In this document: in pieces, positions 11,043 through 59,289 of the stretch
Layout of the letters: each line of letters starts with the position of its first letter
Position numbering within the stretch: the stretch's first letter is position 1
Sequence record: OR413575.1
Length of the DNA stretch: 64,000 bases
Strand: one strand, 5' to 3'
Translations under genes and position numbers: made by a program
Notes under the pieces: generated by a model
What the model was told of the DNA's origin: nothing
Seen by the model: the letters and a program-made list of their open reading frames with translations, nothing else
Database searches by the model: none

Positions 11043-11089
11043 CAGCACAGGAGAGGAGCCGGTTGGCTCCTCTCTGATTTGTGCTCTTA
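11043..11089. repeat. Convergent-junction palindromic element, copy A
   Basis: CAGCACAGGAGAGGAGCC-GGTT-GGCTCCTCTCTGATTTGTGCTC fills the whole gap between two stop codons. Near-identical to 14608-14651 and to the reverse complement of 59242-59286. Confidence 0.9.
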
Positions 11090-12076
11090 TGCACGAGCTT
11101 CTGTAGTAATAGAGTTGGAACCTTGAGCTTGGTGTTTGTGGTTACGCAGACTAATATCTCCGGACTTAACATCTTTATCCGCAGTAACAGTACCAGTAAC
11201 GCTAACGTCACCTGTAGATTTACCTTTACCAGTAAAGCTCCAGTTGCCTAGTACGTTGAAGTCACCTGTATGATCCCAGGTAGTGGCTTTCGACTTAATC
11301 GTCTCTGCTTCAATACCTAAGTGTTTACAAGTAATGAAAACATTCTTAGCTTCCATGGCTAAGTTTTCACCTGCCTCTATCAGAATGTTTTCTTCTGCGC
11401 CCATCAATAGATTCTTCTTGTCCAGTACTACATACGTACCTTCCGAGTTACGAAGTCCCCATTGTTTGGCTTCTGTATTCAAGACAAACTCATTACCCTC
11501 AGCATCACCAAGTGTAATCAATCCATTACCACCATCCAGTAATAATGAATATAAAGATTTTTCACCGTTAGCTTTTGACGTGGTTAAGTTGATGATTCGA
11601 CGATGACCAGAGAACTCAACACGATAATGGTTCTCTATTAATTCATCTTCTTCATCTAATCCGCTGTCAGCCATATCGATGCGCCCACTCGCACCAAGGA
11701 TAACAGTTTCACCACGTCTCTTACGTTTACCGGTACCCATCTCTTTCCAGTAGATGGTCTGACTATCCGCATAACGGTATAAACGAACTTGCTCACCGCG
11801 CCGTACGTCTGGGGCAGTTAACCTGAATGAATCGTCAGGTAGCCACAAAGCATCACGCGCGGAGTTGGTATATAAGGTAGCAGTTTGTTCCTGTCCCCTA
11901 GAGTCAACATACTTAGACTCTAAACGTTGGTTCTCAGAAACTAAGTCTCCATCTAACTTAGGAGTTTCTTCTACAGGAGTGTAGAGAATAACCTTGGAGT
12001 CTAACGGTTTGTTCTCTGCCACTAACCCCATGCCTATATACTTATAGCCTTTAGGTACACCTGCTTCTTCAGCCAT
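11087..12076 (-). CDS. Baseplate central spike / cell-puncturing needle (phiKZ gp164-like, gpV/gp5 family)
   Basis: N-terminal OB-fold-like region (APDVRRGEQV), beta-helix repeats, and a C-terminal apex ISLRNHKH (HxH metal-binding motif). Sits next to SbcC as in phiKZ gp164/gp165. Confidence 0.88.
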   Translation of the reverse strand: MAEEAGVPKGYKYIGMGLVAENKPLDSKVILYTPVEETPKLDGDLVSENQRLESKYVDSRGQEQTATLYTNSARDALWLPDDSFRLTAPDVRRGEQVRLYRYADSQTIYWKEMGTGKRKRRGETVILGASGRIDMADSGLDEEDELIENHYRVEFSGHRRIINLTTSKANGEKSLYSLLLDGGNGLITLGDAEGNEFVLNTEAKQWGLRNSEGTYVVLDKKNLLMGAEENILIEAGENLAMEAKNVFITCKHLGIEAETIKSKATTWDHTGDFNVLGNWSFTGKGKSTGDVSVTGTVTADKDVKSGDISLRNHKHQAQGSNSITTEARA

Positions 12077-12147
12077 GGTTTAGTCACTCTCTTTTTTTAG
12101 TCTCCGTTGTAATCAAATGAAGACAAATTTTAATCAAAGGTCATAAA

Positions 12148-14607
12148 ATGCAGAAGATAGTTAGCGCTGAGGTATTCAAGAACAGCCGTATACTACTTGG
12201 TGAAGATTGTCATATCCGTTATAATCCTACCTCACCCTATCAAGTTATCATTGGACAGAATGGAATAGGTAAAACATCCTTCCTGCACAATCTGACATCA
12301 TATCCTTCCCTTGGAGGGAAGGTCTTTCATAAAGATGGGTTTTCGAACGTAGTTTTTGAACGCGATGGCGTTCGTATTGAAACTCGTCAACAACATGATG
12401 GTAAATACTCGTTTGTTGTTGATAACGAGGAGAAAAATACGGGTGGTACTAAAGCAGTTCAGTGCGATATGTTCGCAGATTACTTAGGTATCACCCCGAT
12501 AGTACAGCAGGTATTAGATCCTACGTTTGACTTCTTGGCAATGCGCCCTAACCAACGTCAAGAGTTCCTGGCTAAGTTAACTACAGGTGACTTATCGTTC
12601 GCTCTCCAGTTACATAAGCGTTTAGAGCAGCGAGCGCGTCAGCACGACAACGCAGTGAAGCGTATGGAAGTGAACTTAGTAGAACTGAAAGCTAAAGCGA
12701 TTGCGCCTGATGAGTACGAGAATCATAAGGCATCTTTAGAGAAGCTCCAGCAAGAAATCACTGAATTATACATGGAGATCGATAACAACGCTCAGAATGC
12801 GTCTGGTAGCGATTTAGATAGCATTGCTCGTCGTATCGGCGACTTAGAGAAATCATTAACTACGGAATGGGTTAAGTACTATACTTGGGGTGGCTGTGCA
12901 GGCGGTACTGAATCCGGTGCAATCGATATTCTTCATTCAATACGTAATAATATCACTGCCGAGGAAACTAAGCTCGAAGGTTTGATGCAACAGTTTCAGA
13001 TGTTCAGTGAAGTTAAAGATTCATTGAACAATGGAGATGTAGGTGATATTACCGATCGCCTCACGTCACTGGAACGTGAACTCGAGCAGTTACCTGACGC
13101 CGATACGCTAATGGATATCTGGTACGATACTGAATCAGATTACCGTAGTGCTATCAGGGAGCTCGAGTCATCGCTAGAGCAGATAGCCCCGCTAATCGCT
13201 ACAATCACCGGCGATTGGACAGAAGATCTATTACGCAGCGATCTAGAGGCCTTACGGACGAAGGTATCATTAACCCAGCAACAGATTTACAAGCTGGACG
13301 CTGAAATAGAAGGGATTGATAAGGAACTAGCTCATTCACATACCGGTGAAGTCCGTTGTCCCGATTGTGGTAAACAGTTTAACCCTACTCTGGATGAACG
13401 TCGTAAAGCAACGATGTTAAAACGTAAGGATGAAGTTACATCTGCTCGTCAGCGCGGCCAGAACTTGTTAGACGAGTTAGTAGCTCGTGGTACAGCAGTG
13501 AAAGAGATGCAAGACCAATACCGTAATATCCATGCTAAGTTAGGTGGTTACGCTTTAGGTCCTGTGCTTAATTGCGTTAATAATCAAACATCATTGTTAG
13601 AAGATCCTCAACAGTGGTTTAGATTATTGAATCAGTCTTTGATAACGTTACGGGCACGTGGTCATCAATGCTCTGTGGAAGCAGACATTCAGGTCATTCG
13701 TAAGCAGCAAGAAATGCTTGAATCTCAGAACCTGGGATCCAGTCAGTCACTTACGGAGAAGATGACCCACCTGGAAGATCAGATCTGGCATTGTCAGAGA
13801 CGCTCTGAGAAGCTCCGTATTGAACTCCGTGAACACAACGACCGTATGGAGAAAGTACGTCGTTACGAAGCGTGGGCAGAACGTCAGAACGCTCTATACG
13901 AGCAATTAGGCGATAACTTACTGTCATTGGCTGAGTATGAACTGAACCAGATGCGTAAAGACGCTTTAATTGTGTTACAATCGTCAGCATCTAACCTTTC
14001 TACGCTGATTGCTAACTATGAAAAAGATCATAACCAGATCGAGTATCTTGAAGGTTTAATTGAATCAGAACGTAAGGAAGGCGAAGCAGCTAAGTTGTCA
14101 GCGGAAGAACTCAGTCCTAAGACGGGTGCTATTGCAGAACAGTTGTTTGGGTTCATTAGTGCTTTCTTAGATGATGTTATGGAAATCTGTAACAACATCT
14201 GGACTTATCACGTAGAGATTTACTCAGGTAAGGATTCCGCGAGTAGCTTAACGTATTTGTTCCCGGTTGAGTTCAACTACTCCAGTACTCAGTCCGAAGA
14301 TATTGCGAAGACCTCAGAAGGTCAGTACTCTTTAATCAACTTTGCGATTAAAGTAACTTGCCTGCGTTACTTAGGTTATTCGAATGCTCCTATCTACTTA
14401 GATGAACCGGATGGTGATATCCACCCTGTCCATAAAGTTAAGATGATGAACTTCATCCGTGCTTTAGTAGAAGAAGAAGTATTCTCGCAGGTGTTCATGA
14501 TCAGCCACCATGAATCTGGTTGGGGTGCATTACCTTACCCTGATCTGGTAGACTTTAGTCAGGAACACGCACTGGCTGGAGCAAACGACGTCATTAAGTT
14601 TAAGTGA
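12148..14607 (+). CDS. sbcC: SbcC/Rad50-like SMC ATPase (phiKZ gp165-like)
   Basis: Walker A GQNGIGKT, long coiled coils, zinc hook CPDCG, signature TSEGQ, Walker B IYLDEPD, H-loop ISHH. Confidence 0.93.
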   Translation: MQKIVSAEVFKNSRILLGEDCHIRYNPTSPYQVIIGQNGIGKTSFLHNLTSYPSLGGKVFHKDGFSNVVFERDGVRIETRQQHDGKYSFVVDNEEKNTGGTKAVQCDMFADYLGITPIVQQVLDPTFDFLAMRPNQRQEFLAKLTTGDLSFALQLHKRLEQRARQHDNAVKRMEVNLVELKAKAIAPDEYENHKASLEKLQQEITELYMEIDNNAQNASGSDLDSIARRIGDLEKSLTTEWVKYYTWGGCAGGTESGAIDILHSIRNNITAEETKLEGLMQQFQMFSEVKDSLNNGDVGDITDRLTSLERELEQLPDADTLMDIWYDTESDYRSAIRELESSLEQIAPLIATITGDWTEDLLRSDLEALRTKVSLTQQQIYKLDAEIEGIDKELAHSHTGEVRCPDCGKQFNPTLDERRKATMLKRKDEVTSARQRGQNLLDELVARGTAVKEMQDQYRNIHAKLGGYALGPVLNCVNNQTSLLEDPQQWFRLLNQSLITLRARGHQCSVEADIQVIRKQQEMLESQNLGSSQSLTEKMTHLEDQIWHCQRRSEKLRIELREHNDRMEKVRRYEAWAERQNALYEQLGDNLLSLAEYELNQMRKDALIVLQSSASNLSTLIANYEKDHNQIEYLEGLIESERKEGEAAKLSAEELSPKTGAIAEQLFGFISAFLDDVMEICNNIWTYHVEIYSGKDSASSLTYLFPVEFNYSSTQSEDIAKTSEGQYSLINFAIKVTCLRYLGYSNAPIYLDEPDGDIHPVHKVKMMNFIRALVEEEVFSQVFMISHHESGWGALPYPDLVDFSQEHALAGANDVIKFK

Positions 14608-14654
14608 CAGCACAGGAGAGGAGCCAACCGGCTCCTCTCCGATTTGTGCTCTAA
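14608..14654. repeat. Convergent-junction palindromic element, copy B
   Basis: CAGCACAGGAGAGGAGCC-AACC-GGCTCCTCTCCGATTTGTGCTC between the SbcC stop and the stop of 14651..15247. Confidence 0.9.
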
Positions 14655-15247
14655 CCACTGATAACGGATTGTAATGCAGCGATCTGTTGGCGTAAGTCTT
14701 CGGCTTCTGCCTCTAGTTCGAGGTTACGAGCGTAAGTAGACTTACGATCTTTAATAGCCGCCTGACGATTTGCTTCCAGTACATCTGCATCTTCACGACT
14801 AATCCCTTGAGCCTCACCGATTACATCAATAAAGATCTCTGGTTCATAGCCGAGAGTGTCGCTCAATGTTTCTTTTACTTTCTGAGTAGTGAACCCAAAA
14901 TCATAATCAGTAGCAAAAGGACCGAGTAACGCTGATAATACATAGTTGGCATAGTTAGGAACGGATTGCGTAGGAAAGCTCTGAATATAAGTAGAAGGTA
15001 CAAACAGCATACCTCCTTCCTCATTATACAGAATAACCAAAGTAGCGCCTTCTTTATAGTCGGCTTCATACTTCGATTGTTCCACCTTCATTGGCTCGTA
15101 ATACGTCTTATAAATGTCGACAGAACTTCCCACAAGTTCGAGGAACGTCCGTAAACCAATAACAGTATAAGTACGAGCTGGATCAGCGACCCATGGTGTA
15201 CGCAATACAAACCGTCCCTTCGTATTTAACGGAGGTACAATATTCAT
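14651..15247 (-). CDS. Conserved phiKZ-like hypothetical (probable virion) protein
   Basis: 198-aa ORF with GAGG RBS and a C-terminal coiled coil, in a minus-strand structural operon. Confidence 0.7.
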   Translation of the reverse strand: MNIVPPLNTKGRFVLRTPWVADPARTYTVIGLRTFLELVGSSVDIYKTYYEPMKVEQSKYEADYKEGATLVILYNEEGGMLFVPSTYIQSFPTQSVPNYANYVLSALLGPFATDYDFGFTTQKVKETLSDTLGYEPEIFIDVIGEAQGISREDADVLEANRQAAIKDRKSTYARNLELEAEAEDLRQQIAALQSVISG

Positions 15248-15916
15248 TTAATCCTCTACAGTGACCTTATAAAAGTTAAGGTATCCATCGTATATCCATT
15301 GACCAGGGCTATTAGGCATTCCGAATAAATACCACGATCCGTTACCATTGCCAAGATCTGCATCTTTTATAGCATGGGATGCAAAAGGCGTAGTTGGATC
15401 AATATCATCGTGATAAAGGTCCATAGTCAGACCAACTCCAACCTCCCTCTTAACTATCGCACGAACCCAGTTCTCTTCATACTTAGCAGCAGGAAGTAAT
15501 CTAGCATAACCAGACTTTTCAGTTTGGACAAATGCTTGAACCCAGGCTGTAGGGTATTGGTTAAGAGTTATGCTGATACCAGGCGTTATCCCTCTGTTGT
15601 TATCACCAGTGCCACCTATCGCTATAAGTGAATTGGTGCGAGGTTTGAATTCAGTCTCTATCGTAAAGTTTTTACCCTGTAGCTCAAGATCTGGAGTAAC
15701 TGGCGTTATAGCAAACCTATCACCGATGTTAACCCAGACCGGGCCACGATCGCTACCGACCACACGGGCTTCGGATACAGGCGATTGCCAAATCCAAGTC
15801 CTACCCGTATGGTCAACGATTTGTTTACTACCCTGACCAGCACCTTTCCAGTTTATATCTATCACTACTTCACCTCCTGATTTTTTAGAAGGTAAAAGCA
15901 TTGATTCGATCATCAT
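15248..15916 (-). CDS. Probable virion protein with a concanavalin-A/LamG-like beta-sandwich
   Basis: MIESMLL..GG N-terminus, IVDHTGRTW, and FTIETEFKP pattern typical of LamG-like domains. AAGG RBS. Confidence 0.6.
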   Translation of the reverse strand: MMIESMLLPSKKSGGEVVIDINWKGAGQGSKQIVDHTGRTWIWQSPVSEARVVGSDRGPVWVNIGDRFAITPVTPDLELQGKNFTIETEFKPRTNSLIAIGGTGDNNRGITPGISITLNQYPTAWVQAFVQTEKSGYARLLPAAKYEENWVRAIVKREVGVGLTMDLYHDDIDPTTPFASHAIKDADLGNGNGSWYLFGMPNSPGQWIYDGYLNFYKVTVED

Positions 15917-15922
15917 TCGTCC

Positions 15923-17230
15923 TTACAGACCAAAGTCCTTCTTAATAGGACAAAGGAACTGGATGTTGTCTACAGATGTTGTGAGGTAGTATACCCCATC
16001 ACGTACGGTGCGAGTCATATCTTGCGGGATGATCGTATGTTCTGTAGCTACCTCAGCAGCTTTAAACAGTCCGTTCAACTGCATGATCATAACTTGTGTC
16101 GCAGGCGGAATTCTTCCGAAATCTGGAGACTTAGTGTCTACAGCGGAATATGCAGGCCATTGTTCATCGAACGCTGGTTTAGCAGCATAGTTTTGTGGAT
16201 TCCCGCACGACAGGAACATCACTTCTTGATAATTCGCGGCATGTATGCCGAGATTCTCACGGAGATGATCTTCACTGTACCCCTTACAGTACTTAAGCGC
16301 ATAAGGGAGAACATTCTTCAAGCGCACACTGGAAGAGTAAATGCCGGTTCCCTCTGCTTTATTAGGCAGTGCGACCTTATCCCATTGAGGGATGACATAG
16401 AACTCGGTAGGTACAAAAAGTTCAGGATAGATTACGGACCAAACATCTTCGCCATGTTCGGACAAAGACAGAATAAGGTTACGCAAGTATTCCTTGATCA
16501 TGTCGATGTTCTTACTCTGTGGGCCATAACAGAGGACAGAGAACGGCGAGTCCATTGAGATGTCAGGGTTATCTTTGTCATGCCATTTGAAGTTCATGGT
16601 GACGAGATAAGTCTGAGGATGACCTTGCGCTGCTGCATCAACTCGGGAGTTATGGTTAACGATAGTGATCGCGTTTAACAGAGCAATTGCCTGGTCACGG
16701 TCGCCTGCAAGTTTATCAATGTCATTGTTGACAACTGGCAGAATACCGGTATAATCAGAGTTGGGATAGAAATCTTCCAGCGACTGATGACTGTACCAGA
16801 TGTACAAATCGTTCGCCTCTCCAGCATTAGTCGCACTGAGAGTAATGTACGTCGGGAATAGGTACGAATCTTTGTAGATGATGTCGCCGATCTCTTTGAT
16901 ATCAGCAATGTCACCAAATTCTGCCCGTAGTGCCTGAAGCAAAGTAGGAACATCTGCAGGGATGTTACCAGTAATAGAACGGTTGTACAGCCATTCTGTG
17001 ACATGGAGCATTAAGTCCTGATAGGTAAGCCCCACCGCCACTTCGACACTGTCACGCTCTGAACTCAGTGAAATAAACTGAGAGTTCGGGTAACGGGTGA
17101 GAGAATAACGTTCGACTTCGTTGCTATAGGTGTAGTTTTCCTTCGTCATTTCGCCGATGGGGGAAACTTGCCCTGGCTCGTTTAATCGGAAGTTAGGGAT
17201 TTCACCAAACCCGTATAATGCATAACTCAT
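15923..17230 (-). CDS. Virion structural protein (phiKZ gp157-like)
   Basis: 435-aa ORF with GGAG RBS; syntenic position upstream of RNase H as in phiKZ-like phages. Confidence 0.7.
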   Translation of the reverse strand: MSYALYGFGEIPNFRLNEPGQVSPIGEMTKENYTYSNEVERYSLTRYPNSQFISLSSERDSVEVAVGLTYQDLMLHVTEWLYNRSITGNIPADVPTLLQALRAEFGDIADIKEIGDIIYKDSYLFPTYITLSATNAGEANDLYIWYSHQSLEDFYPNSDYTGILPVVNNDIDKLAGDRDQAIALLNAITIVNHNSRVDAAAQGHPQTYLVTMNFKWHDKDNPDISMDSPFSVLCYGPQSKNIDMIKEYLRNLILSLSEHGEDVWSVIYPELFVPTEFYVIPQWDKVALPNKAEGTGIYSSSVRLKNVLPYALKYCKGYSEDHLRENLGIHAANYQEVMFLSCGNPQNYAAKPAFDEQWPAYSAVDTKSPDFGRIPPATQVMIMQLNGLFKAAEVATEHTIIPQDMTRTVRDGVYYLTTSVDNIQFLCPIKKDFGL

Positions 17231-17278
17231 TGTGCATCTCCGTTATAATGGAAACTTTAATAAAAATAGGAGGCAGAC

Positions 17279-17767
17279 GTGTTTAGCGTCGCATTCAGCC
17301 TCATCATCAATATCTACAAGTTCATTCGTGAAATGTATCGTAGAGATGAAAAACTGGGCGTGAAGAAAAAACATATACCTCGGTACAGGTTTGCTATCTC
17401 GGTGTTAGCTACCTTCTTTGTTTTATACGTTTGTGTTACCGTATTCTTCGGTATCAAGACGTTGAATAAAGAGGTAAACGCAGCAGAAGCACCTGTGGTA
17501 ACTACATCACCCGTAGATGATCATAAGGATCTCAGTCGTGCGATGAGCTACCTAATTCATAAGAAGAACCTCTCTGAGTTCCTCAATGAAGCCGCGTTGT
17601 ATGAACTCGATACTATCTGCAAAGATAATCCAAAAGATTGTGCAGACAGTACGCGCAGGACGATGATGCAATTAAAAGACTTTCTTGATGCAGCTCAAAA
17701 AGAGAAAGCGTTAATGGAAGACGCTTATTTAAAAGAGAAAGCAGCGGAAGAACCCGTTAAAAAATAA
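17279..17767 (+). CDS. Hypothetical membrane protein
   Basis: GTG start with GGAGG RBS; hydrophobic segment FAISVLATFFVLYVCVTVFFGI followed by a helical/coiled domain. Confidence 0.65.
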   Translation: MFSVAFSLIINIYKFIREMYRRDEKLGVKKKHIPRYRFAISVLATFFVLYVCVTVFFGIKTLNKEVNAAEAPVVTTSPVDDHKDLSRAMSYLIHKKNLSEFLNEAALYELDTICKDNPKDCADSTRRTMMQLKDFLDAAQKEKALMEDAYLKEKAAEEPVKK

Positions 17768-17816
17768 CTTACAGGCATCTTCATTTGATAGAGTTTGATT
17801 AAATGAGGATGCCCTA

Positions 17817-19379
17817 ATGTCTAAGGACAAAAAGTTAGAAGGTTCAACTGGGTTAGTGTTGTATACCGATGGTGGTAAAGACACAACGTCCGAAGCAGCA
17901 GGTTGGGGTGTCCATGGATACCTCTACGAACTGCTTGAAGAAAAGAAAGATCGGTTCAAGAAAGATAAAGCCGCCTATGGTCAGTACGGTTATGTCAACG
18001 GGACTAAGACGACAGCGACTTTCAAGCCAGGCGAACGTTTAGTAGAGCCGGGTGGTTTGTACAAGCTCGTAGTGAACGAACCAAAGTCAATGCCGTCTGC
18101 TCCTGTAACACCGGTTAAGTTTTTCGACTTCTACGAACCAGCTCCGGGACAATCTATTAGTCAGGTCGAAATGCGCGCAATGGAAGTTGCGCTCGATCTT
18201 ATCGGTGAAACTGGAGTCGTACAAGCTGTAATTGTTGCAGATTCTGAATACGTTTGTAAATCGTTGACGGAATATATTTTCGGTTGGCTCAAACGCGGAT
18301 GGGTCCGCAGTAACGGTAAAGTAGTAGAACACTCGGATGTGTGGAAACGTATCTGGGAGAAACTTACCAAACTTCGTGAGGCCGGTGTAGTAGTACGTAT
18401 CGGTTGGACTCGTAGCCATGTTGGTGAACCGGGTAACGAAGCAGCTGATGCTTGCGCAACGCGTGGTAAGATTGCAGTGTATAATGCTTTGAGTGGTGAG
18501 CGCCGGGAATGTCTTGCAGCTAATTACGGCCAGAAGAAGAAGTTATCCAACCGTCTTCTCGAGCAACGCTGGTGGTACGGCATCAACAACGAACTCAGTA
18601 ACCAATACGATGAATTCCCAGGTAAACATGTTTACTACTTTGGTAACCATGGGAAAGCCGAAGAGGAAGATGACCTCATCGGTAAGTTTACTTCGACAGC
18701 CAAAATTGCTATCCTGGTTACTCCAGAAGCTGAACCCGTACTGGATATGCTGAATAGCTACCTGTACGATCGTTATTACGATGAAGTGGGTGCAGTGACT
18801 CTGGGTTATCTGGAACATATCACGAACACGGAGCGATACGCTCAGTTGTTACAGGATGAACGTGCCGCGTTATATCCTCGTGGTAATAAATGCGTCTATA
18901 CTCCAGACGGCGTGCCGGTGATGAAGGAACTGCGCCCTACGTTCCATGGTCTTCGTTTATTAGACCAGTTAAGTCACCACCTTAACATTCTGCAACGTTA
19001 TAACGAGCAGGATGAGTCAATCACAGTGACAGACATTACTGACATTGTGTATACACGTACAGACAATGGTAAAAAGATTGTGGTCGATACTGCTGAATGC
19101 ATTAACGCTCCGCATAAAACCGTTCGTTTGGAAGTGGCTTATAAATGCATGAAGAATGAAGGTAAGAAAACTATCCCGTTTAAGATGGGACAAGACCTGC
19201 CTTTACGTAATACTCTGAAAGCAATCTTATCAAGCCATGACGATATTAAGGTTTACGCAATCACATGGCAACGGTCGTCGAATGAATTCCGTTACGGTAC
19301 TGTAGTTAAAGCTGGGGAGGACTTACTGTTAACCTGTTCGTTAGCTTCGAACTTAGTTACCTTAGTAGGTCTAAAATGA
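17817..19379 (+). CDS. rnhA: Ribonuclease HI with C-terminal extension (phiKZ gp155-like)
   Basis: Catalytic motifs LYTDGG, SQVEMRA, VADSEYV and RSHVGEPGNEAADACA. Confidence 0.92.
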   Translation: MSKDKKLEGSTGLVLYTDGGKDTTSEAAGWGVHGYLYELLEEKKDRFKKDKAAYGQYGYVNGTKTTATFKPGERLVEPGGLYKLVVNEPKSMPSAPVTPVKFFDFYEPAPGQSISQVEMRAMEVALDLIGETGVVQAVIVADSEYVCKSLTEYIFGWLKRGWVRSNGKVVEHSDVWKRIWEKLTKLREAGVVVRIGWTRSHVGEPGNEAADACATRGKIAVYNALSGERRECLAANYGQKKKLSNRLLEQRWWYGINNELSNQYDEFPGKHVYYFGNHGKAEEEDDLIGKFTSTAKIAILVTPEAEPVLDMLNSYLYDRYYDEVGAVTLGYLEHITNTERYAQLLQDERAALYPRGNKCVYTPDGVPVMKELRPTFHGLRLLDQLSHHLNILQRYNEQDESITVTDITDIVYTRTDNGKKIVVDTAECINAPHKTVRLEVAYKCMKNEGKKTIPFKMGQDLPLRNTLKAILSSHDDIKVYAITWQRSSNEFRYGTVVKAGEDLLLTCSLASNLVTLVGLK

Positions 19380-19741
19380 TAAACCGCGTCCTGGAATCAA
19401 TCTCTAAGCGCGTGATGAATGATAAAGGGAGACGTGTGCTGTTGATCATGTCTCTCTATGCATTGATTACGAAAGCACAAGGGAAAGAACTTCACCTCGC
19501 GCAACTGAATGAAGAATTGAACTTAGTCGTAGAACATGACGGATGCGACTTCCCTTCGATGAGTTGTATTTACGACGTCATCTGGGGTTGTCGATTTAAG
19601 GAGTTTGCAGCTAAAGCTCCCGCTGAAAAAATCATGCGCTACGTGACAGTTCGGTTGCCGAAGTGGTTGGACTATAGAGGGAGTAAAGAGTATAGCTTCG
19701 ATTCTGATATTGCTACACTCACACGACTTCTGGCAAAATAA
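19376..19741 (+). CDS. Hypothetical protein
   Basis: 121-aa ORF, ATGA-coupled to the RNase H stop. Confidence 0.7.
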   Translation: MINRVLESISKRVMNDKGRRVLLIMSLYALITKAQGKELHLAQLNEELNLVVEHDGCDFPSMSCIYDVIWGCRFKEFAAKAPAEKIMRYVTVRLPKWLDYRGSKEYSFDSDIATLTRLLAK

Positions 19742-19782
19742 TCCAAGGAGAGGAGCAGATGCTCCTCTCCTCTGTGCTGTTA
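19742..19782. repeat. Convergent-junction palindromic element, divergent copy
   Basis: AAGGAGAGGAGCA-GA-TGCTCCTCTCCT followed by CTGTGCTGTTA; fills the gap between two stop codons. Confidence 0.8.
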
Positions 19783-20631
19783 CTGTTTCGCTAACTTGGT
19801 ACAGGCCTGATCGAACGTGCGTTTATGTTCAGTGAATAAACTGAGCACTACACCGTAATACTCAACCGCCTGAGCTAAGTTATAACTGATCTTAGCCAGC
19901 TGATCGATGTTTTTACCGTTCATGCGGTACGACGTATTACTGTCAACAATATCTTCACTGATCTGTTGCAGTTGCTTACGGATATGAGCAATACGTTCAG
20001 TCACTAAATCTTGGTTACTGGAGTACAACTCTTCACTGAAGCGGTTGGTCAATGCAATAACGGATTGGAAATCAGTATTACGTTCAACCAACTTACCATA
20101 AGGGAGATCACCCTTACTGGATTTACCACTGACATTACCAGCAATAGTTTTAGTCAGTTGATCGAAATCAATCGCTTGGATATTGTAGCGACGAGCGATA
20201 GAATCCATTTTGTCCGGGGAAGTAATGATTTCCGCCAGGAACTTAGTCGACTGCCCCAGAGTACCGTCGTAGAAGTTAGTAGCGAATTTAATGCCGCCTT
20301 CCAAATCAGTCAGGAACTTCAACCATGTAGTGTTCAGGCCACCGATACACGGCAGGGACAGAGACATGAGATCGGCATAAGAGTTACGCTGGACAAACTG
20401 AGATGCTTTCTGCTGGACAGTAGACTGAGTACGGTCACGATGCAGGATAGTATCCAGCGCACCCAGGATGTCAGTGTTCTTAAAACCGTCTGCTACTTCA
20501 CGAATAAATCCGCTTAATTTAGTAACAGTACCAGCTAATGGTTTATGCACAGACAACGCCTCAGTAGAGATGACATTGTACATAAACTGCTGGGGTAGAC
20601 GATGCTGCGATAATACATTAGTAGGTTTCAT
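19780..20631 (-). CDS. Virion structural protein (phiKZ gp153-like, probable head protein)
   Basis: 283-aa helical ORF divergent from UvsX, with an early STE motif that is a possible protease site. Synteny with phiKZ-like phages. Confidence 0.68.
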   Translation of the reverse strand: MKPTNVLSQHRLPQQFMYNVISTEALSVHKPLAGTVTKLSGFIREVADGFKNTDILGALDTILHRDRTQSTVQQKASQFVQRNSYADLMSLSLPCIGGLNTTWLKFLTDLEGGIKFATNFYDGTLGQSTKFLAEIITSPDKMDSIARRYNIQAIDFDQLTKTIAGNVSGKSSKGDLPYGKLVERNTDFQSVIALTNRFSEELYSSNQDLVTERIAHIRKQLQQISEDIVDSNTSYRMNGKNIDQLAKISYNLAQAVEYYGVVLSLFTEHKRTFDQACTKLAKQ

Positions 20632-20726
20632 TTATACAATCCTCTTCAATATACATAAAATTAGAGGTATTGGTCACTTTACATGAGACACAATTACCCA
20701 TACCAGTTTTAGTAAGGAGTTAATAC

Positions 20727-22166
20727 ATGTTAATGCCTGGTAAATTCCTCAAACCAGAACACGAAGCAAAAGCGGCGACACCTCGTCCAAACTGCGGAAT
20801 TATGATCGATGGTCATAATGGCAACTATGTACCAGGTGTTGAGAATGGCGAAGAAGGCCATATGATCCTGAACGGTGGTGCTACAGCAACTACCGGTATT
20901 CTGGGTGGCCCTAACCAGTTTAAGTCTACTCTGGCTGACTGGTTGACTTTTGCTCCACTGGAACAGTATTACGATAACGCCACATCGTTAACGTTCGATG
21001 CGGAAGATTCAAAGGAATACGAACAGTTAGTTGTCCGTATGCCTTACCACAAACGTATTCAAGCCGACGGCGCGTTCGATAACGATCGCATCTGGCTGAC
21101 TAAACAATCGGTTATGTTCGCCGACCAATATTGGGATGAAGTGCGTAAGCCGTTCGGTGTGGCTAAGATGGCAGAGAAAAACTCTCTGTTACAGACACCT
21201 ATCCTGAACGGGAGTCGTGGGTTGATTGACATCATTCCCCCAACATTCGAACAACAGGACTCATTCTCCCGTATGAACTTCGGTGAGGTAGAGAAGAAGT
21301 ACCATGATGCGAAAGTCGACTCCAAAGACCGTAACATGGAGTTTACTCGCCCTGGTCTGATCAAGACACGTATTCTGGCAGAGATGCCTACCATCAACCC
21401 ACAACACGGTTTCTACACTGTAATGACCGCTCACTTAGGTGACGACATGCAGTTGGATGCTGGTTATGGGTCAATGCCTAAACGTGTACTGGCTAACCTC
21501 GAAGCTGGCAAAAAAATTAAAGGGTGTCCTGAACAGTTCCTTTACATGCCGAACAACATGTGGTTCTGCGCTAACCAGAAACCTCACTGGGATAAAGACA
21601 TGACGCCGATCTATGGTCGTAATGGCGAACCCGGTAAGAAAGGTAGCAAGGACGTTGTTACTGTTAACATCATGAACCTGCGCGGTAAGTCCGGTGCATC
21701 CGGTGCCCCGTTCCCAATGTTGATGTCCCAGTCCTTAGGTCTGTTACCTAACCTGTCGATGTTCAACTATCTGCGTGAAGATCAGAAGTACTTCGGTATG
21801 GCTGCCGGTAACAACACCACGATGGCGCTGGACTTCTGCCCGGATATCAAGATGACCCGTAACAAAGTATGGGAAACAGTTGATTCTGATTACCGGTTAC
21901 AGCGTGCATTAGAACTCACCGTTGGGCTGGCACAGATCCGTAACCAAATGGCTCATTTGGGTAACATTATCCATACGCCGCCTGAAGAGATCTTCAAGAA
22001 GTTAAAAGAACAGGGATACGATTGGGATGTCATTTTAGGCGAGACTCGCGGTAAGTGGCAGTTCACTTCGGTCAAATCTGATACCAAATATTTATCTGCC
22101 CTCGACCTGCTCCGGATGTACCAGGGTATCTGGATGCCGAGCTGGTTGGGTAAATCCCATAAATAA
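20727..22166 (+). CDS. uvsX: UvsX/RecA-like recombinase (phiKZ gp152-like)
   Basis: Variant Walker A GGPNQFKST, FDAED, and FEQQDSFS Walker-B-like segment; typical jumbo-phage length. AAGGAG RBS. Confidence 0.85.
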   Translation: MLMPGKFLKPEHEAKAATPRPNCGIMIDGHNGNYVPGVENGEEGHMILNGGATATTGILGGPNQFKSTLADWLTFAPLEQYYDNATSLTFDAEDSKEYEQLVVRMPYHKRIQADGAFDNDRIWLTKQSVMFADQYWDEVRKPFGVAKMAEKNSLLQTPILNGSRGLIDIIPPTFEQQDSFSRMNFGEVEKKYHDAKVDSKDRNMEFTRPGLIKTRILAEMPTINPQHGFYTVMTAHLGDDMQLDAGYGSMPKRVLANLEAGKKIKGCPEQFLYMPNNMWFCANQKPHWDKDMTPIYGRNGEPGKKGSKDVVTVNIMNLRGKSGASGAPFPMLMSQSLGLLPNLSMFNYLREDQKYFGMAAGNNTTMALDFCPDIKMTRNKVWETVDSDYRLQRALELTVGLAQIRNQMAHLGNIIHTPPEEIFKKLKEQGYDWDVILGETRGKWQFTSVKSDTKYLSALDLLRMYQGIWMPSWLGKSHK

Positions 22167-22179
22167 AGGATAGTTGTAA

Positions 22180-22467
22180 ATGGTCCGTAACGATGCTCGA
22201 TTTCATCTGGTAATGTTGATCTCCTCACATAGCCATCGTCAAGCCAACGCATTTGAAGCGTTGTTTAATCATGCAGATAAACAACGTTCAAGTGATCGTG
22301 CTGAGATGCAAGAGATCAATGAATTTTGGGGACGTGAACTACGTCCCTTTACTCGCGTTGGTTCTGATGTAGCTTATAACATCGAAACTGATCGTGGTGT
22401 AGATTTCTGGTTAAAGGAAATCGAAGATAAACTGATGCGTTATATCCTCAAAAACTGGAGGCCGTAA
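22180..22467 (+). CDS. Hypothetical protein
   Basis: 95-aa ORF with AAGGA RBS, in an operon. Confidence 0.7.
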   Translation: MVRNDARFHLVMLISSHSHRQANAFEALFNHADKQRSSDRAEMQEINEFWGRELRPFTRVGSDVAYNIETDRGVDFWLKEIEDKLMRYILKNWRP

Positions 22468-22470
22468 TCC

Positions 22471-22965
22471 ATGGCAATGAGTGGTCATGTCGTTACGGTA
22501 GTGGGGCCGGTAAATAACAGAAGTTATTTCCAGTTCGCTCGTAAGATGGATTCTATTCTTCATCGATTGGAGAAAGATGACATTACCATTCTATCTGGTA
22601 TTGAAGACGGTACGGACTATCTGACGATGGTCTACGCTTTACGGCGTGGACTTCGTCATGTCCAGTACGCTCCTGACAGATATGAAGGTGAAGCAGCGAT
22701 ATATCGTATGCATGAGCGAATGTTAAGAGAGTCCACACATACCGTAATATTTAAGTCTGGATTCAGTAAACATATATGGGCTGCTACTAAGGTAGCAAAG
22801 GAACTCCATATTCCTGCTCGAATCATCACATATCCGGAGAATACCCATGCCGAAGAATCGAAAGGCGGCTACCGACGTCTGCGTGAAATTGATGTCCGAT
22901 CTTTATCCAGGTACCGAAAACGCAGAGTTGACACGCCGATACCTCGATGGGATGTCAAACGCTGA
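22471..22965 (+). CDS. SLOG/YspA-like (DUF2493-type) protein
   Basis: Pattern VVTVVG..(R)..ITILSG.EDGTD....YA..RG....AP...AA..RM...ML.EST..VIF..G fits the SLOG fold. Its 3' end overlaps the next gene by 119 nt. Confidence 0.6.
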   Translation: MAMSGHVVTVVGPVNNRSYFQFARKMDSILHRLEKDDITILSGIEDGTDYLTMVYALRRGLRHVQYAPDRYEGEAAIYRMHERMLRESTHTVIFKSGFSKHIWAATKVAKELHIPARIITYPENTHAEESKGGYRRLREIDVRSLSRYRKRRVDTPIPRWDVKR

Positions 22966-23524
22966 GTTCGATGCTTACATCACTGAGCTACGCGAAAAAC
23001 GTTCTGTTGTCACTGCAACTGTTCCCAACTTCGATCCGAAGAAATTCGACGAAGAGCACTTCTTGAAATTTGGTAAGAAACACGGTGTTGAATTCTTCCA
23101 CCGTTTGAAAGTTACCGACCCGGATACGGGACGTGTATTTACAACCCCACATCGTTACATGGTTATCCGTGACCGTGTTAACCGTCTCCAACAGATGTTG
23201 GAAGATAAAACTTCATTCCCGATGGACAATAACCATGTGGATGAATTGTCTGGCCAGGTAACTAACGAGTCTAAAGGTGCTCGTTTGTCATTCCCTGAAA
23301 TTAACAACTTGAACGCAAAATGCTTCCGCGCATTCGTAGCTGAAACAATCGGTGTACGTGGCGGTAACCAGAAAGCATTGCGTTTATTCGAAGCTCAGTT
23401 ACGTTCTACAGGTACTGCGTCAGCGGCGATGGCATTAGATGCCAGTGATGGTGCGAAGGCAACACACACGCTTGCAGCATACCTGAGAGCTATGGGTTTC
23501 GGTACTACCCTGGATCGGAGATAA
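22847..23524 (+). CDS. Virion RNA polymerase beta subunit, C-terminal part (phiKZ gp149-like)
   Basis: RLQQMLEDK...SGQVTNESKGARLSFPE resembles the RpoB C-terminal KL.H.VDDK...GGQRFGEME region. GGAG RBS. Confidence 0.85.
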   Translation: MPKNRKAATDVCVKLMSDLYPGTENAELTRRYLDGMSNAEFDAYITELREKRSVVTATVPNFDPKKFDEEHFLKFGKKHGVEFFHRLKVTDPDTGRVFTTPHRYMVIRDRVNRLQQMLEDKTSFPMDNNHVDELSGQVTNESKGARLSFPEINNLNAKCFRAFVAETIGVRGGNQKALRLFEAQLRSTGTASAAMALDASDGAKATHTLAAYLRAMGFGTTLDRR

Positions 23525-23527
23525 TAA

Positions 23528-24040
23528 ATGTCTATCATTATTCAGTTCATTGAACGATCCATGGATTACGTGGAGCGTCAGCTTAAGTTATTAGAGGTAG
23601 CTACTGAAACTGCACAAGCGGCAGGGGAAGAAAAAGTAGTGGAGTTCGCACACGTGAGTCGTAGTGCTGACTTCTTATCCCGCTTTATGGAAGGTTCTTC
23701 CATTTACCAGTTGTTCACCAAGGAAGAGTTGAACAAGTTTGTGAATATGCAGTTGTCTGGAGGCACTTGGGATTTTGTTGTAGGATTGCAGCAATATACC
23801 TTTGCGCCGTTCACCATAAATGAAATCTTGGAGATCGCGGGTGGGTTGGCTTTTGCGATTGCGCCGAATAAGACTCTGAGTAATGTTCCTAAAGAACTGA
23901 TGCAAAGTCCTACTGGTTCGGAAGCTGTCGATAATACACCGGAAGATGTAGAATTGATTCTACACGCTAACCCTTGGTTAATGCCTCTGTGTGCATTGTC
24001 ACTGAGTCGCGATATCCCGATGTTTATGAATGAGGGTTAA
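23528..24040 (+). CDS. Hypothetical protein
   Basis: 170-aa ORF in an operon with the vRNAP fragment. Confidence 0.72.
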   Translation: MSIIIQFIERSMDYVERQLKLLEVATETAQAAGEEKVVEFAHVSRSADFLSRFMEGSSIYQLFTKEELNKFVNMQLSGGTWDFVVGLQQYTFAPFTINEILEIAGGLAFAIAPNKTLSNVPKELMQSPTGSEAVDNTPEDVELILHANPWLMPLCALSLSRDIPMFMNEG

Positions 24041-24042
24041 CA

Positions 24043-24861
24043 ATGGTTGATCAACCTGGATTACCAGGTGAAGAGGTCCATGTCCTGACATGGTTGGATG
24101 ATTTGTTCGATACACGAATCTCCACTATGTTTCGTTACGATATGGAAAAAGCTATTAAGCTGATTCCTCAGGGTTATGATATCCGCACCTGTGATAACTT
24201 TATTTGGGAAGGTCTTGGTGTTACTAAAGAAGCATGGTTGCACATGTGGAATAATCGTGACGATGAGATCTTAGTCAATTCGGTCCGTAGTGCTGTACCT
24301 GACTTTATTCGTGAACTGTTAGGTGAGCATATTCGCCAACCAGCACGACCTGGTAAACAGTCGCCCATTACAGTGACAATCAATATTTATCCTTATTACT
24401 TAACGGATGAAGTGAAGGACGGATTAGTTGAAGCATATCGTGAAATGATTCACCCTATGCTTGACGTACGTTTTATCCGTAAGTCGTATAAGGATCTGTC
24501 ACCGGCGTTTGTAATTGCTAAGTACACCATGGTGATTCACTACGATTACGACGTATGGTTGGCTGAGGCAGCACAAAGCCCAGAGCGGGCCAATATGACA
24601 ACATTGAATGTCATTGGCCCGCGTATCTGGAAAGATGCACCGTCGGCTGAAGAACAAGAGAAGTATAAAGAAGAGCTTGAGCACTTCGATATTCACATGT
24701 TGGCAGAAATGGCAACAGCTCTTGTATTCCAGTTGAACCTGGTCCCGGTGGATTTATGGGTAGCCTATAAGACTAACCATAGATTCAGTCAAGAAACAAA
24801 AGACATCTTGTTCCCTGATGCCGCTGGCCAAGCACCTGCTTCAATGCCGGAGAAGATTTAA
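24043..24861 (+). CDS. Conserved phiKZ-like hypothetical protein
   Basis: 272-aa ORF with a WLDDLFDTRIST motif that recurs in phiKZ-like phages. GAGG RBS. Confidence 0.72.
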   Translation: MVDQPGLPGEEVHVLTWLDDLFDTRISTMFRYDMEKAIKLIPQGYDIRTCDNFIWEGLGVTKEAWLHMWNNRDDEILVNSVRSAVPDFIRELLGEHIRQPARPGKQSPITVTINIYPYYLTDEVKDGLVEAYREMIHPMLDVRFIRKSYKDLSPAFVIAKYTMVIHYDYDVWLAEAAQSPERANMTTLNVIGPRIWKDAPSAEEQEKYKEELEHFDIHMLAEMATALVFQLNLVPVDLWVAYKTNHRFSQETKDILFPDAAGQAPASMPEKI

Positions 24862-25373
24862 TCATCATCTTCTCGTAGACCACCTGTTAACAGATCAGGG
24901 TTCTCTGCTTCTACTCGTTTGAAGAATTGATCAGGCGTTTCTTGAGCGTTCTCAGTAATGAGTTCGCCAGATACTACAGTAGGGGCAGGGAGCCAAGATC
25001 CTTCGAGAATCTCATTACGCGACAGAGCTTCGCTTGATGGAGTAATATCAATCTCCACGCGTTCGCCGGTATTACGTTTACGAGACATCTCTTCTAACAA
25101 AAGTGCAATCTGAGCATTAGATTTACTATCTTTCTTAGAGATTTGGATTCGTTGTTTAGCAATGGACTGGCGGTCAATTCCGTCAAGGAAGTTTGCGAAT
25201 ATACTTGCTGAATCTTTATCAGTAGGTACATCACCACCATTCTCAACCATTAACTTTTCAATGACCCTTTTACGCAACTGTTGAGTAAAGGATAAGTCGG
25301 GATCTTGTTCGTCCAACTTGGCCTTTCCGTCATCGGGTGCATCAGGAAGAGTCAGCTCTTCATCTTCTTCCAT
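24858..25373 (-). CDS. Acidic hypothetical protein
   Basis: 171-aa ORF with GAGG RBS; converges on and overlaps 24043..24861 by 4 nt. Confidence 0.7.
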   Translation of the reverse strand: MEEDEELTLPDAPDDGKAKLDEQDPDLSFTQQLRKRVIEKLMVENGGDVPTDKDSASIFANFLDGIDRQSIAKQRIQISKKDSKSNAQIALLLEEMSRKRNTGERVEIDITPSSEALSRNEILEGSWLPAPTVVSGELITENAQETPDQFFKRVEAENPDLLTGGLREDDD

Positions 25374-25416
25374 TTTTTTATTTCCTCATACTTCAATTTA
25401 AACTTACGTTTGAATA

Positions 25417-25436
25417 TATATTATTCAAGTGACATA
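25417..25436 (+). promoter_or_regulatory. Candidate early (vRNAP-type) promoter, degenerate
   Basis: TATATTATTCAAGTGACATA resembles the TAyATTACTATAGTGAATA motif seen at 49078, 55321, 63087 and 63742. Confidence 0.45.
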
Positions 25437-25459
25437 GGATTCATAATAAGGAGTTAGCA

Positions 25460-25966: not shown

Positions 25967-25977
25967 GCCCTTAACTT

Positions 25978-26733: not shown

Positions 26734-26734
26734 G

Positions 26735-27841: not shown

Positions 27842-27844
27842 CTC

Positions 27845-27868
27845 TAGAGTTCCCTTCGGGGAACTCTA
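27845..27868 (+). terminator. Hairpin terminator (UUCG loop)
   Basis: TAGAGTTCCC-TTCG-GGGAACTCTA, a perfect 10-bp stem. Confidence 0.7.
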
Positions 27869-27889
27869 ATTATGCTCTCGGAGAATGTA

Positions 27890-28867: not shown

Positions 28868-28873
28868 TGTATC

Positions 28874-29599: not shown

Positions 29600-29601
29600 T
29601 G

Positions 29602-49077: not shown

Positions 49078-49100
49078 TATACATTACTATAGTGAATAGA
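49078..49100 (+). promoter_or_regulatory. Candidate early (vRNAP-type) promoter
   Basis: TATACATTACTATAGTGAATAGA; core resembles the phiKZ early TATATTAC consensus and is repeated upstream of other accessory genes. Confidence 0.7.
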
Positions 49101-49650: not shown

Positions 49651-50181
49651 ATGTCCAAAGAAAAAAGCATGGTTGACGTAGCAATTGAAGAAGCTGCAAA
49701 AATGGGTAACGCGGAAATCCGTCAGGCTTCTAAACTCAGCGTAGGCGATCTGGTGAAAACCAACATCGTAATGCCTGAGTACCGTGACGAAGAAGGTCGT
49801 CCTCTACCGAAAGCAGAAGTGAAGCGTCAGGTAGAGCAGTACTGCCACGAACAAAAGATCGGGATGTTGGCACATTCTATCGGCCTGGGCCTTGGGGTAG
49901 ATTTCCCTATCGGGTATACAATCGCCCTGGAAAAATGCGAAGAGTTCTTGAAAGATCTGAAGGTCGTTATCAAACGTACTAACGGAGACTTCACTACTAG
50001 CGTTGAAATTCCAGGCGGCGTATACAACATGGTAGATACCGATCGTCATGCTCTGGCGTTACGTGCGATCCACTTCATGTTACTGCGTCAAGATCCTGAC
50101 ACCGATGAATTCGTACAACGTCGTTTGTTCAGCGAAGTTAACCAGATTGCTGAAGTTCTGGGAAACCAAACTAAACACTAA
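49651..50181 (+). CDS. Hypothetical protein
   Basis: 176-aa ORF. Confidence 0.75.
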   Translation: MSKEKSMVDVAIEEAAKMGNAEIRQASKLSVGDLVKTNIVMPEYRDEEGRPLPKAEVKRQVEQYCHEQKIGMLAHSIGLGLGVDFPIGYTIALEKCEEFLKDLKVVIKRTNGDFTTSVEIPGGVYNMVDTDRHALALRAIHFMLLRQDPDTDEFVQRRLFSEVNQIAEVLGNQTKH

Positions 50182-50188: not shown

Positions 50189-50219
50189 GGAGGACTTCGG
50201 TCCTCCAGTTGTGCTGTTA
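50189..50219 (+). terminator. Hairpin followed by a TGTGCTGTTA tail (same tail as the convergent-junction elements)
   Basis: GGAGGAC-TTCG-GTCCTCC-AGT-TGTGCTGTTA; no U-tract. Confidence 0.7.
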
Positions 50220-55320: not shown

Positions 55321-55340
55321 TATATTACTATAGACTAATA
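55321..55340 (+). promoter_or_regulatory. Candidate early promoter
   Basis: Exact TATATTAC followed by TATAGACTAATA. Confidence 0.72.
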
Positions 55341-55945: not shown

Positions 55946-55946
55946 G

Positions 55947-57744: not shown

Positions 57745-57758
57745 TTAGTATAATAGAG

Positions 57759-57795
57759 GAAGGGCTACGGCCCTTCTTTTTTTTTTTGCTTGAAT
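57759..57795 (+). terminator. Rho-independent terminator
   Basis: GAAGGGC-TACG-GCCCTTC, then T11, then GCTTGAAT. Confidence 0.85.
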
Positions 57796-57850: not shown

Positions 57851-58099
57851 ATGTTAGAGTTAATGTTAGGAGGCGGTGAAGATACTTCTAGCGGAGTGAT
57901 AAATCAGATTACTGGTATTGCTGTATATGCTCCGGTAAGAAAAGGAGTGTTAAACCAATTAACCGGACTGGCTGTTTATCAACCTATCCGTAAAGGCGTT
58001 ATAAATCAAGTCACGGGCTTGATGGTGTATACTCCAACCCGTAAAGGGGTAATTAATCAGGTAACCGGTATAGTCATTGTTAAGGAATTGATAAAATGA
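57851..58099 (+). CDS. 82-aa protein of four 17-aa tandem repeats
   Basis: GV(I/L)NQ(I/L/V)TG(I/L)xVYxPxRK four times after MLELMLGGG. AAGGAG RBS. Confidence 0.72.
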   Translation: MLELMLGGGEDTSSGVINQITGIAVYAPVRKGVLNQLTGLAVYQPIRKGVINQVTGLMVYTPTRKGVINQVTGIVIVKELIK

Positions 58100-59241
58100 G
58101 CATGTATAGAAGATTTTATGGGTGGGAGAACTTTTACGGTAGCAACTCGGCCAGTAACTTTAGCGGTAAAAGATACGAACCTTTTGATACAGCGTTAAGT
58201 TGGGCTTTCCGCAGAGATAACAAATTAAATCTAGCTGTGGCAACTATACGTGGCGACCAGCTTAATAGTAATTTATCTACTGTAGTAAGAACTAGCCTTG
58301 TCAGTAACTCTACATTAATGAGAGTTGATAAGACAAACGCTGGTTCCGAAGGTTCCTTGTTGTTACGGTTAGAAAGTAAAGAAAAAGGTATTACTCGATT
58401 CGGTCTTAGAATGACTCGTGGTAATTTGGTCAGCGCGCCCACTTTATACGTGACGGGTAGTTTCTCAATTATTAACGGCACTGAGGTTTGGTCTGCTTAT
58501 AGTTTCGCTTACTCCGCGGGTACTCAAGTATACGTAGAGATAGAAATAGACTGGGGTGAGAAGATCGCCAAGTTTTACATGAATGATGCTTTGAATGGTA
58601 CTATCGAATTCACTTCATTGAGTTCGATCTACCTCGGAAGTTTCGTTAAGCCGTCTTATGTACGTACCCAGCCTGGTAGTGCTACGGGCGGTAGTACATT
58701 GTCATGGGCGTATAATGGTACTAATAGGTATCAGTCTTGGGGCGATATGTACTTGACGTACTGGGATGGAGAGGGTGATGATGATGGTCGTTATGGTCCT
58801 ATACATTGCGTTCGACTGCCGCCTAAAGATCTTATCGTCGGTGGTTCATTAAAAGGTTATAGTACGAACTCGCAGTTTACTGACACCACTCAGACGTTTG
58901 ATCAGTATTCAAACGTAGGTGTTCTGACAAGTAGTGTAAATGCTGAAACGTCCGTAGCATTTGATCAGATCGACGGTACTACTGTTAATGGCGAAGTCTT
59001 AGGTTATTCATTCTCTGTGTCTGGTACAGAGAATGATAATACTCAGCCTCTGGCCATTGATGCTAATATCTATCACGGAGAAAAAGAAGTCCCTTTGAAT
59101 TCAGATATTCAAGTTACTCCACTCACTGGCTCTACACCTAATGGCGCATACCCTAATACATCAGTAGGTTATATTCCGGCAAGTGAATTAGCTAAGGGAG
59201 AAGTCATTACTCTTGGCGCTAAGTTAGTCCGCAGGAAATAA
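58096..59241 (+). CDS. Probable virion structural protein (beta-sandwich)
   Basis: 381-aa Ser/Thr/Gly-rich ORF. Y.EIEIDW, WGDMYL and GPIHCVRLP patterns resemble jumbo-phage tail-associated families. Confidence 0.65.
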   Translation: MSMYRRFYGWENFYGSNSASNFSGKRYEPFDTALSWAFRRDNKLNLAVATIRGDQLNSNLSTVVRTSLVSNSTLMRVDKTNAGSEGSLLLRLESKEKGITRFGLRMTRGNLVSAPTLYVTGSFSIINGTEVWSAYSFAYSAGTQVYVEIEIDWGEKIAKFYMNDALNGTIEFTSLSSIYLGSFVKPSYVRTQPGSATGGSTLSWAYNGTNRYQSWGDMYLTYWDGEGDDDGRYGPIHCVRLPPKDLIVGGSLKGYSTNSQFTDTTQTFDQYSNVGVLTSSVNAETSVAFDQIDGTTVNGEVLGYSFSVSGTENDNTQPLAIDANIYHGEKEVPLNSDIQVTPLTGSTPNGAYPNTSVGYIPASELAKGEVITLGAKLVRRK

Positions 59242-59289
59242 GACGGCACAAATCGGAGAGGAGCCAATGGCTCCTCTCCTGTGCTGTTA
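59242..59289. repeat. Convergent-junction palindromic element, copy C (reverse orientation)
   Basis: Reverse complement is CAGCACAGGAGAGGAGCC-ATT-GGCTCCTCTCCGATTTGTGCCGTC. Confidence 0.9.

Follow-up and report, generated by a model that had tools for sequence, protein, structure and literature searches.

The termination of transcription by the RNA polymerases of nucleus-forming jumbo phages is almost unstudied, and a 2025 review of these phages does not contain the word termination. In phiKZ, 133 termination regions were located by ONT-cappable-seq, which sequences primary transcripts as long reads, and a conserved motif was found at 61 of the mapped terminators, in which a GC-rich stem-loop is followed by a tail with a consensus ending YTTATKYYGT (Putzeys et al. 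2024; PMC10914365). Mapping in 201phi2-1 gave 132 termination sites, and motif A (n=59) was reported to 'strongly resemble' the phiKZ motif, with motif A and motif B together giving a longer stem; eight of these terminators cut read-through in uninfected Pseudomonas chlororaphis (PMC11512511). The authors class the terminators of the family, the common form of which is T-rich, as intrinsic. Here, a GC-rich hairpin followed by a tail of the form TRTGCTGT was examined in the genome of Salmonella phage SPLA10 (GenBank accession number OR413575.1; 210197 bp), and in particular in a stretch of 64000 nt (bases 62001-126000 of the record), referred to below as the window.

As a nuclear shell protein (chimallin), the tubulin PhuZ and seven RNA polymerase beta-type pieces are annotated in its genome, SPLA10 is a nucleus-forming, phiKZ-like jumbo phage with split multisubunit RNA polymerases, which a first-pass annotation made from the letters of the window had taken for granted. 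Among the sequenced relatives of SPLA10, Serratia phage PCH45 is the closest (61% identity between the baseplate proteins), and Erwinia phage PhiEaH1 comes next.

The SPLA10 hairpin-tail units are likely (probability approximately 0.75) to be transcription terminators of the phiKZ-like class, many of them bidirectional. Judged by its sequence, the signal is not new in kind and belongs to the terminator class already published for phiKZ-like phages. The homologous phiKZ tail TTATKYYGT was published in 2024.

Hairpins and tails in the SPLA10 genome

The scripted hairpin statistics cover the window and bases 1-49990 of the record, together 114 kb of the 210 kb, and the rest of the genome was examined by pattern search and inspection of the printed sequence. 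The hairpin finder accepts only perfect stems of at least 7 bp, and returned 54 hairpins in the window, approximately 15 of them both GC-rich and intergenic, with the tail present on one or both strands in seven of those. When the 14 nt 3' of GC-rich hairpins were searched on both strands, the degenerate 8-mer T[AG]TG[CT][CT][GC]T was found in 10 of 46 flanks in the window, where 0.06 are expected, and in 3 of 32 flanks in bases 1-49990 of the record (0.05 expected). The enrichment next to hairpins that had been proposed as a check on the motif was thus found, at a frequency well removed from random. A 5-mer test of the flanks that presupposes no motif placed TGTGC at the top (10 observed against 0.33 expected, p=2e-12), followed by GTGCT, GCTGT and TGCTG, and then by T-runs. 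Longer forms behaved in the same way, with five matches to TGTGCTSTWA against 0.56 expected and six to TGTGCTGTYA against 0.26 expected, numbers that were reached in 0 of 100 shuffles in either case. The degenerate 8-mer showed no genome-wide enrichment (19 against 27.7, 26 against 25.3 and 7 against 6.8 expected), and as it is at or below chance genome-wide yet enriched in hairpin flanks, the signal is tied to hairpins.

The tail is present on at least 12 unrelated stems genome-wide in SPLA10, in line with the earlier statement that the motif is held across differing stems. A chance origin of the hairpin-tail pairing was ruled out by the shuffles and the flank statistics, and a free-standing motif or promoter by the background frequency of the 8-mer away from hairpin flanks. 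No Rfam family matched the window or record bases 160601-210197 with a score that reached the gathering threshold, which rules out a known RNA family for the unit in these regions.

All six sites listed in the first-pass annotation were recovered and read as it had given them, and a further site and a second tail at the last site were added. The hairpins of the six sites are perfect GC-rich stems of 7-11 bp, with predicted RNA fold energies of -13.5 to -34.6 kcal/mol and z-scores of -2.7 to -7.6. The putative terminators of the window are as follows (window coordinates).

11040-11089, both strands: bidirectional terminator A at a convergent junction; hairpin at 11051-11074, with a 5-nt spacer to the plus-strand tail
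11040-11049, minus strand: tail of A, TGTGCTGTCA; the last 3 nt are the TGA stop codon of gene 10386-11042
11080-11089, plus strand: tail of A, TGTGCTCTTA; the last 3 nt are the stop codon of gene 11087-12076
14605-14654, both strands: bidirectional terminator B, a repeat copy of A; hairpin at 14615-14640
14605-14614, minus strand, and 14645-14654, plus strand: tails of B, both overlapping the opposing stop codons
19746-19782, plus strand: terminator C; hairpin at 19746-19771, then 1 nt, then tail TGTGCTGTTA at 19773-19782
27845-27878, plus strand: co-directional terminator; hairpin at 27845-27868, then 2 nt, then tail TATGCTCT at 27871-27878
28043-28086, both strands: bidirectional terminator D; hairpin at 28054-28075, with a ten-T run (canonical type) on the plus side
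28043-28052, minus strand: tail of D, TGTGCTGTCA; the last 3 nt are the stop codon of gene 27890-28045
50189-50219, plus strand: co-directional terminator F; unrelated 7-bp hairpin at 50189-50206, then 3 nt, then tail TGTGCTGTTA at 50210-50219
59239-59289, both strands: bidirectional terminator E, the A/B repeat in opposite orientation; hairpin at 59255-59279
59239-59250, minus strand, and 59280-59289, plus strand: tails of E, TGTGCCGTCTTA and TGTGCTGTTA respectively, both ending in opposing stop codons

The predicted folds at the three related sites are -29.3 and -27.1 kcal/mol for A (z about -5), -30.6 and -31.2 kcal/mol for B, and -34.6 and -29.0 kcal/mol for E, where the minus-strand tail TGTGCCGTCTTA is the addition to the earlier list. 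The loops of the near-identical repeats A and B differ, being GGTT (11061-11064) and AACC (14626-14629), which are reverse complements of each other, and the loop seems to have been flipped inside an otherwise conserved palindrome. At site C, the TTA of the tail is the stop codon of gene 19780-20631, and on the minus strand a T-rich tail stands in place of the motif. The site at 27845-27878, which was missing from the earlier list, starts 3 nt past the stop codon of gene 26735-27841 and has a fold energy of -17.2 kcal/mol. The hairpin of F begins 7 nt past the stop codon of gene 49651-50181, and 16 nt separate the end of its tail from the next start codon. Structure prediction leaves the tail unpaired at 19773 (site C), 27871, 28043 (minus strand) and 50210.

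A scan for T-runs (at least five T in 8 nt) over bases 10000-29999 flagged only the sides at 11050 (plus), 14615 (plus), 19772 (minus) and 28054 (plus), and none of the TGTGCTGT sides in that range. By eye, the sites at 50210 and 59280, which lie outside the scanned range, have 3-4 T in 8. The U run directly after the hairpin that defines a canonical intrinsic terminator is therefore lacking on the TGTGCTGT sides and present on the opposite strand of several junctions. The absence of a U-tract, one of the features first attributed to the signal, holds for the SPLA10 form of the tail (3-4 T in 8), but not for the family form, which is T-rich, nor for the plus strand of D with its ten T. After T-run terminators, GCTTG or GCTTC is often found (window 28076-28090 and 57777-57792; L002, 47145-47165), and some tails read TTTTTTGCTGTCA (record position about 36826; PCH45, L006, 17461-17471). 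There thus seems to be a continuum between U-tract tails and TRTGCTGT tails.

Gene ends and related phages

The units have a constant anatomy in which the GC-rich stem begins 0-8 nt past the upstream stop codon and the tail lies 0-5 nt past the stem. The distance to the upstream stop codon is tightly fixed, whereas that from the tail to the next start codon is variable (12-117 nt). All eight tails at the convergent junctions of the window end on the opposing stop codon or no more than 1 nt from it, which bears out the overlap with opposing stop codons noted at first reading. Across the genome, 19 convergent junctions are annotated, two of them with overlapping genes, and a full tail was found on at least one strand in 14 of the 17 that have a spacer and a partial tail in the other three. 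Two convergent forms were seen. In one (A, B and E), tails on both strands are part of an extended imperfect palindrome, and in the other a run of 6-10 T on one strand is combined with the tail on the other, as at D (window 28043) and at record positions 3589, 13702, 178988 and 203777, where the D architecture recurs. The unit was not found in any of the 11 printed divergent intergenic regions.

Eight co-directional junctions clearly have a sense-strand tail (record positions 3036, about 8858, 89871, 112210, 144681, 147176, 165153 and 181265), and the order of hairpin then motif, originally suggested by a single co-directional site, was upheld, with a modest sense-strand bias (8 versus 2). The original view of the unit as a transcript end also stood, given its position 0-8 nt after stop codons, its presence at most convergent and none of the printed divergent junctions, and the homologous motif at mapped 3' ends in phiKZ and 201phi2-1.

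Conservation was examined by counting the GC-rich hairpin flanks with TATG or TGTG no more than 10 nt 3' of the stem, and the observed numbers (expected numbers in parentheses) were as follows.

SPLA10: TATG 6 (1.33), TGTG 10 (0.80)
PCH45: TATG 3 (0.54), TGTG 6 (0.42)
PhiEaH1: TATG 6 (0.22), TGTG 0
Serratia phage 2050HW: TATG 10 (0.37), TGTG 0
phiKZ: TATG 16 (1.30), TGTG 0
PAK_P3, a host-polymerase-dependent control: TATG 2 (0.52), TGTG 3 (0.91)

There was no excess of the tail next to hairpins in PAK_P3, the hairpins of which bear plain T-runs. In bases 1-50000 of phiKZ, the tails after hairpins include TTATGTCAT, TTTATGTTGTTAAAA and TTTATGCTGAG, and TTATGCTGTTAA appears at some left flanks when the other strand is read. 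The perfect-stem finder gave no signal in Goslar, which is a limit of the method as the annotated terminators of Goslar have imperfect stems; these terminators carry the tails TTTTTATGCTGTTAAA and TTATGTTTGG. The tail was thus found on unrelated stems in six genera infecting four host groups (SPLA10, phiKZ, PhiEaH1, 2050HW, Goslar and PCH45). As the same tail is carried by unrelated hairpins in six genera and is missing from the host-polymerase-dependent phage, the published phiKZ motif looks to be a signal of the whole family and not a local peculiarity.

The junction after the baseplate gene, where site A lies in SPLA10, retains the tail in SPLA10, PCH45 and PhiEaH1. As the stems at this orthologous junction share nothing, comparison of the sequences indicates that the tail is under selection of its own across the six genera. 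Tail position 2 is G in most SPLA10 copies and A in about a third, and the leading TT is often missing. G at this position is a trait of the SPLA10/PCH45 lineage.

Several other features of the genome were recorded. Matches to a sigma-70-like promoter are scarcer than chance in bases 10000-29999 of the window (23 against 37.3 expected, sd 6.2), a deficit that fits transcription independent of the host RNA polymerase. An AT-rich element that includes TTACTATAG, extended as ATTACTATAGTGAATAG, occurs at window positions 49084-49092, 55325-55333 and 63092-63100 (plus strand), with a variant near 63745-63775. The three exact copies of TTACTATAG are all intergenic and upstream of plus-strand genes, and the element is a candidate early (virion-polymerase) promoter of the phiKZ-like kind. 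No gene is annotated in a 325-nt stretch at record positions 181011-181337, which includes GC-rich structured segments and closes with a hairpin and the tail TATGCTGTCA; an AT-rich promoter-like element comes next. This stretch, which has no Rfam match, may encode a non-coding RNA. A 470-nt region without an annotated gene at a convergent junction (record positions 162651-163121) includes at least three hairpin terminator-like elements.

An unannotated open reading frame of 164 aa (window 22471-22965, plus strand) occupies the 379-nt gap before an RNA polymerase beta piece (22847-23524) and overlaps it. Its product shows a weak likeness to the SLOG domain (E=4e-5, below the Pfam cut-offs), and its position is that at which a 'GTP-binding domain' gene is annotated in PhiEaH1 and 2050HW. 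The gene annotated as 'ribonuclease' (window 17817-19379, plus strand) encodes an RNase H domain (E=7e-17), and the product probably corresponds to the RNase H-clamp protein that was recently reported from Goslar.

Possible mechanism and competing readings

A terminator of this class would consist of a GC-rich RNA hairpin just after the stop codon and, within 0-5 nt, a conserved tail T-(A/G)-T-G-Y-Y-G-T that often runs on as TA(A), and would be read in the order hairpin then tail to mark the end of RNA made by the phage multisubunit polymerases. SPLA10 and PCH45 have a form of their own, in which tail position 2 is mostly G and the T-rich lead-in of the other genera is lacking. The hairpin would form in the nascent RNA and the tail would stand in for the U-tract; the tail may slow or destabilise the polymerase 6-9 nt past the stem, after which the hairpin would release the transcript. 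The pyrimidine-then-G steps of the tail resemble the conserved portion of the elemental pause, a universal signal, and may act in this way.

A number of observations weigh against this reading. The sites at 11040, 14605 and 59239 are copies of one repeat of approximately 50 nt and so are not independent, which inflates the window counts, and in the predicted fold their tails pair with the upstream arm and may be a mere lengthening of the stem. At two co-directional junctions (record positions about 11011 and 166689), the tail is found on the antisense strand only. The 3' ends mapped at the motif come from phiKZ and 201phi2-1 and not from SPLA10 or PCH45, and phage specificity is weakened because the 201phi2-1 terminators work in uninfected host cells. 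The pause-element mechanism is one that we infer, and the upstream G-rich element of the pause consensus is unmatched in the SPLA10 tail. In addition, the tail core TATG is also the core of the phiKZ late promoter, which leaves some room for a start signal.

This last point underlies an alternative in which a late promoter core T-(A/G)-T-G of the non-virion polymerase follows a terminator hairpin, so that the unit stops one transcript and starts the next and, at convergent junctions, launches antisense RNA into the opposing gene. Transcription from the late promoter of phiKZ, T(-3)ATG(+1), starts at the G; each of the four bases is needed, and the promoter has no further conserved element that is known (PMC7598289). 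A gene start follows every co-directional tail at the 12-117 nt given above, and antisense RNAs have been reported for phiKZ. However, SPLA10 tails are mostly TGTG and fail the strict TATG requirement of phiKZ, they are fixed to the upstream stop codon and not to the downstream start codon, and more than half point into the 3' end of the opposing gene. Tails without a hairpin never rise above background frequency, and tails are absent from the printed divergent junctions, where promoters must lie. As the phiKZ motif was moreover derived from mapped 3' ends, a start signal is improbable. When strand bias of TATG and TGTG upstream of genes was used as a promoter test, even the phiKZ positive control was unbiased (19 versus 16). 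A post-transcriptional role, in which transcription ends elsewhere and the hairpin and tail serve in 3'-end protection, as the site of a phage or host RNA-binding protein or as a mark for export from the phage nucleus, would suit a tail that is sequence-specific and predicted to be single-stranded at several sites. The phage nucleus is a compartment that mRNA must exit, and ChmC is a known RNA-binding protein. The published crosslinking peaks of ChmC are near start codons and no sequence motif was detected, which rules out ChmC as the reader of the tail; a processing site for a nearby ribonuclease was also rejected, as the only such product annotated (17817-19379) is the RNase H-domain protein. 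Terminators of this class also lower read-through in a reporter assay without phage factors, and a role of this kind is considered unlikely.

The near-identical copies A, B and E, which occur in both orientations and with inverted loops, could also be read at the level of DNA, as a REP-like or miniature mobile repeat, or as a target for recombination or cruciform processing, without any part in transcription, and SPLA10 does encode SbcCD-like proteins. Against this, at least 12 unrelated stems and six genera share the tail, which lies only at gene ends and, at co-directional junctions, is strand-biased relative to transcription, making a DNA repeat a very remote explanation. A more specific proposal concerns how a terminator would be read. 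The tail could be a family-wide termination code that is read by the polymerase without a U-tract, with the enzyme recognising its own start core T-(A/G)-T-G, stalling a few bases past the hairpin and releasing the RNA, perhaps through a permanently bound promoter-specificity subunit or a universal pyrimidine-G pause contact. This proposal is tentative and on balance doubtful, but if true it would account for the conservation of the tail between Pseudomonas and Salmonella phages despite differing stems.

Comparison with known terminator and pause signals

The analysis yields two natural variants of the tail, which differ in having A or G as the second base, and a clean set of bidirectional junctions with a U-tract on one strand and the tail on the other. 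It also yields a practical rule for annotating operon ends in the genomes of nucleus-forming jumbo phages.

Canonical intrinsic terminators share with the SPLA10 units a GC-rich hairpin near the stop codon, and many SPLA10 junctions have an arm with 6-10 T. Unlike canonical terminators, the tail sides of SPLA10 combine 3-4 T in 8 with G and C, and the RNA-DNA hybrid is therefore not of the weak all-U type. The phiKZ late promoter has the same four-base core as the family-wide tail but, unlike the SPLA10 tails, needs no hairpin and sits upstream of genes. The most conserved elements of the elemental pause include t-3, g-2, Y-1 and G+1 (PMC11077087), and the signal is effective on RNA polymerases from bacteria to mammals (PMC6336406). 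As in a hairpin-stabilised pause, there is a hairpin upstream of the SPLA10 tail, which opens with exactly this part of the consensus, and the second pyrimidine-G step is 6-7 nt past the stem, the usual release distance of hairpin terminators.

The lengthened stem formed by motifs A and B of 201phi2-1 resembles SPLA10 sites A, B and E, in which the two tails pair, though the likeness of the 201phi2-1 motif is one of description, its logos having been published as figures only. The closest correspondence is with the phiKZ motif. Both phages belong to the same family, and in both the hairpin comes directly after gene ends, bidirectional forms are found at convergent genes and the tail register is the same (T-R-T-G-Y-Y-G-T and T-A-T-K-Y-Y-G-T). 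The stem-loop at the gene end, the tail register and the phage's own multisubunit RNA polymerases that characterise phiKZ-type terminators are all present in SPLA10, and its tail, T-R-T-G-C-T-G-T, matches T-A-T-K-Y-Y-G-T throughout, save for G at position 2. Unlike the phiKZ motif, that of SPLA10 and PCH45 mostly has G at position 2, often lacks the leading T-rich bases and stands on unrelated stems. How these polymerases terminate becomes open to a direct test by the mapping of transcript ends through what this comparison adds to the published motif, namely that the tail is conserved family-wide although the stems are unrelated, that it varies between A and G by lineage, and that it coincides with both the late-promoter core and the pause consensus.

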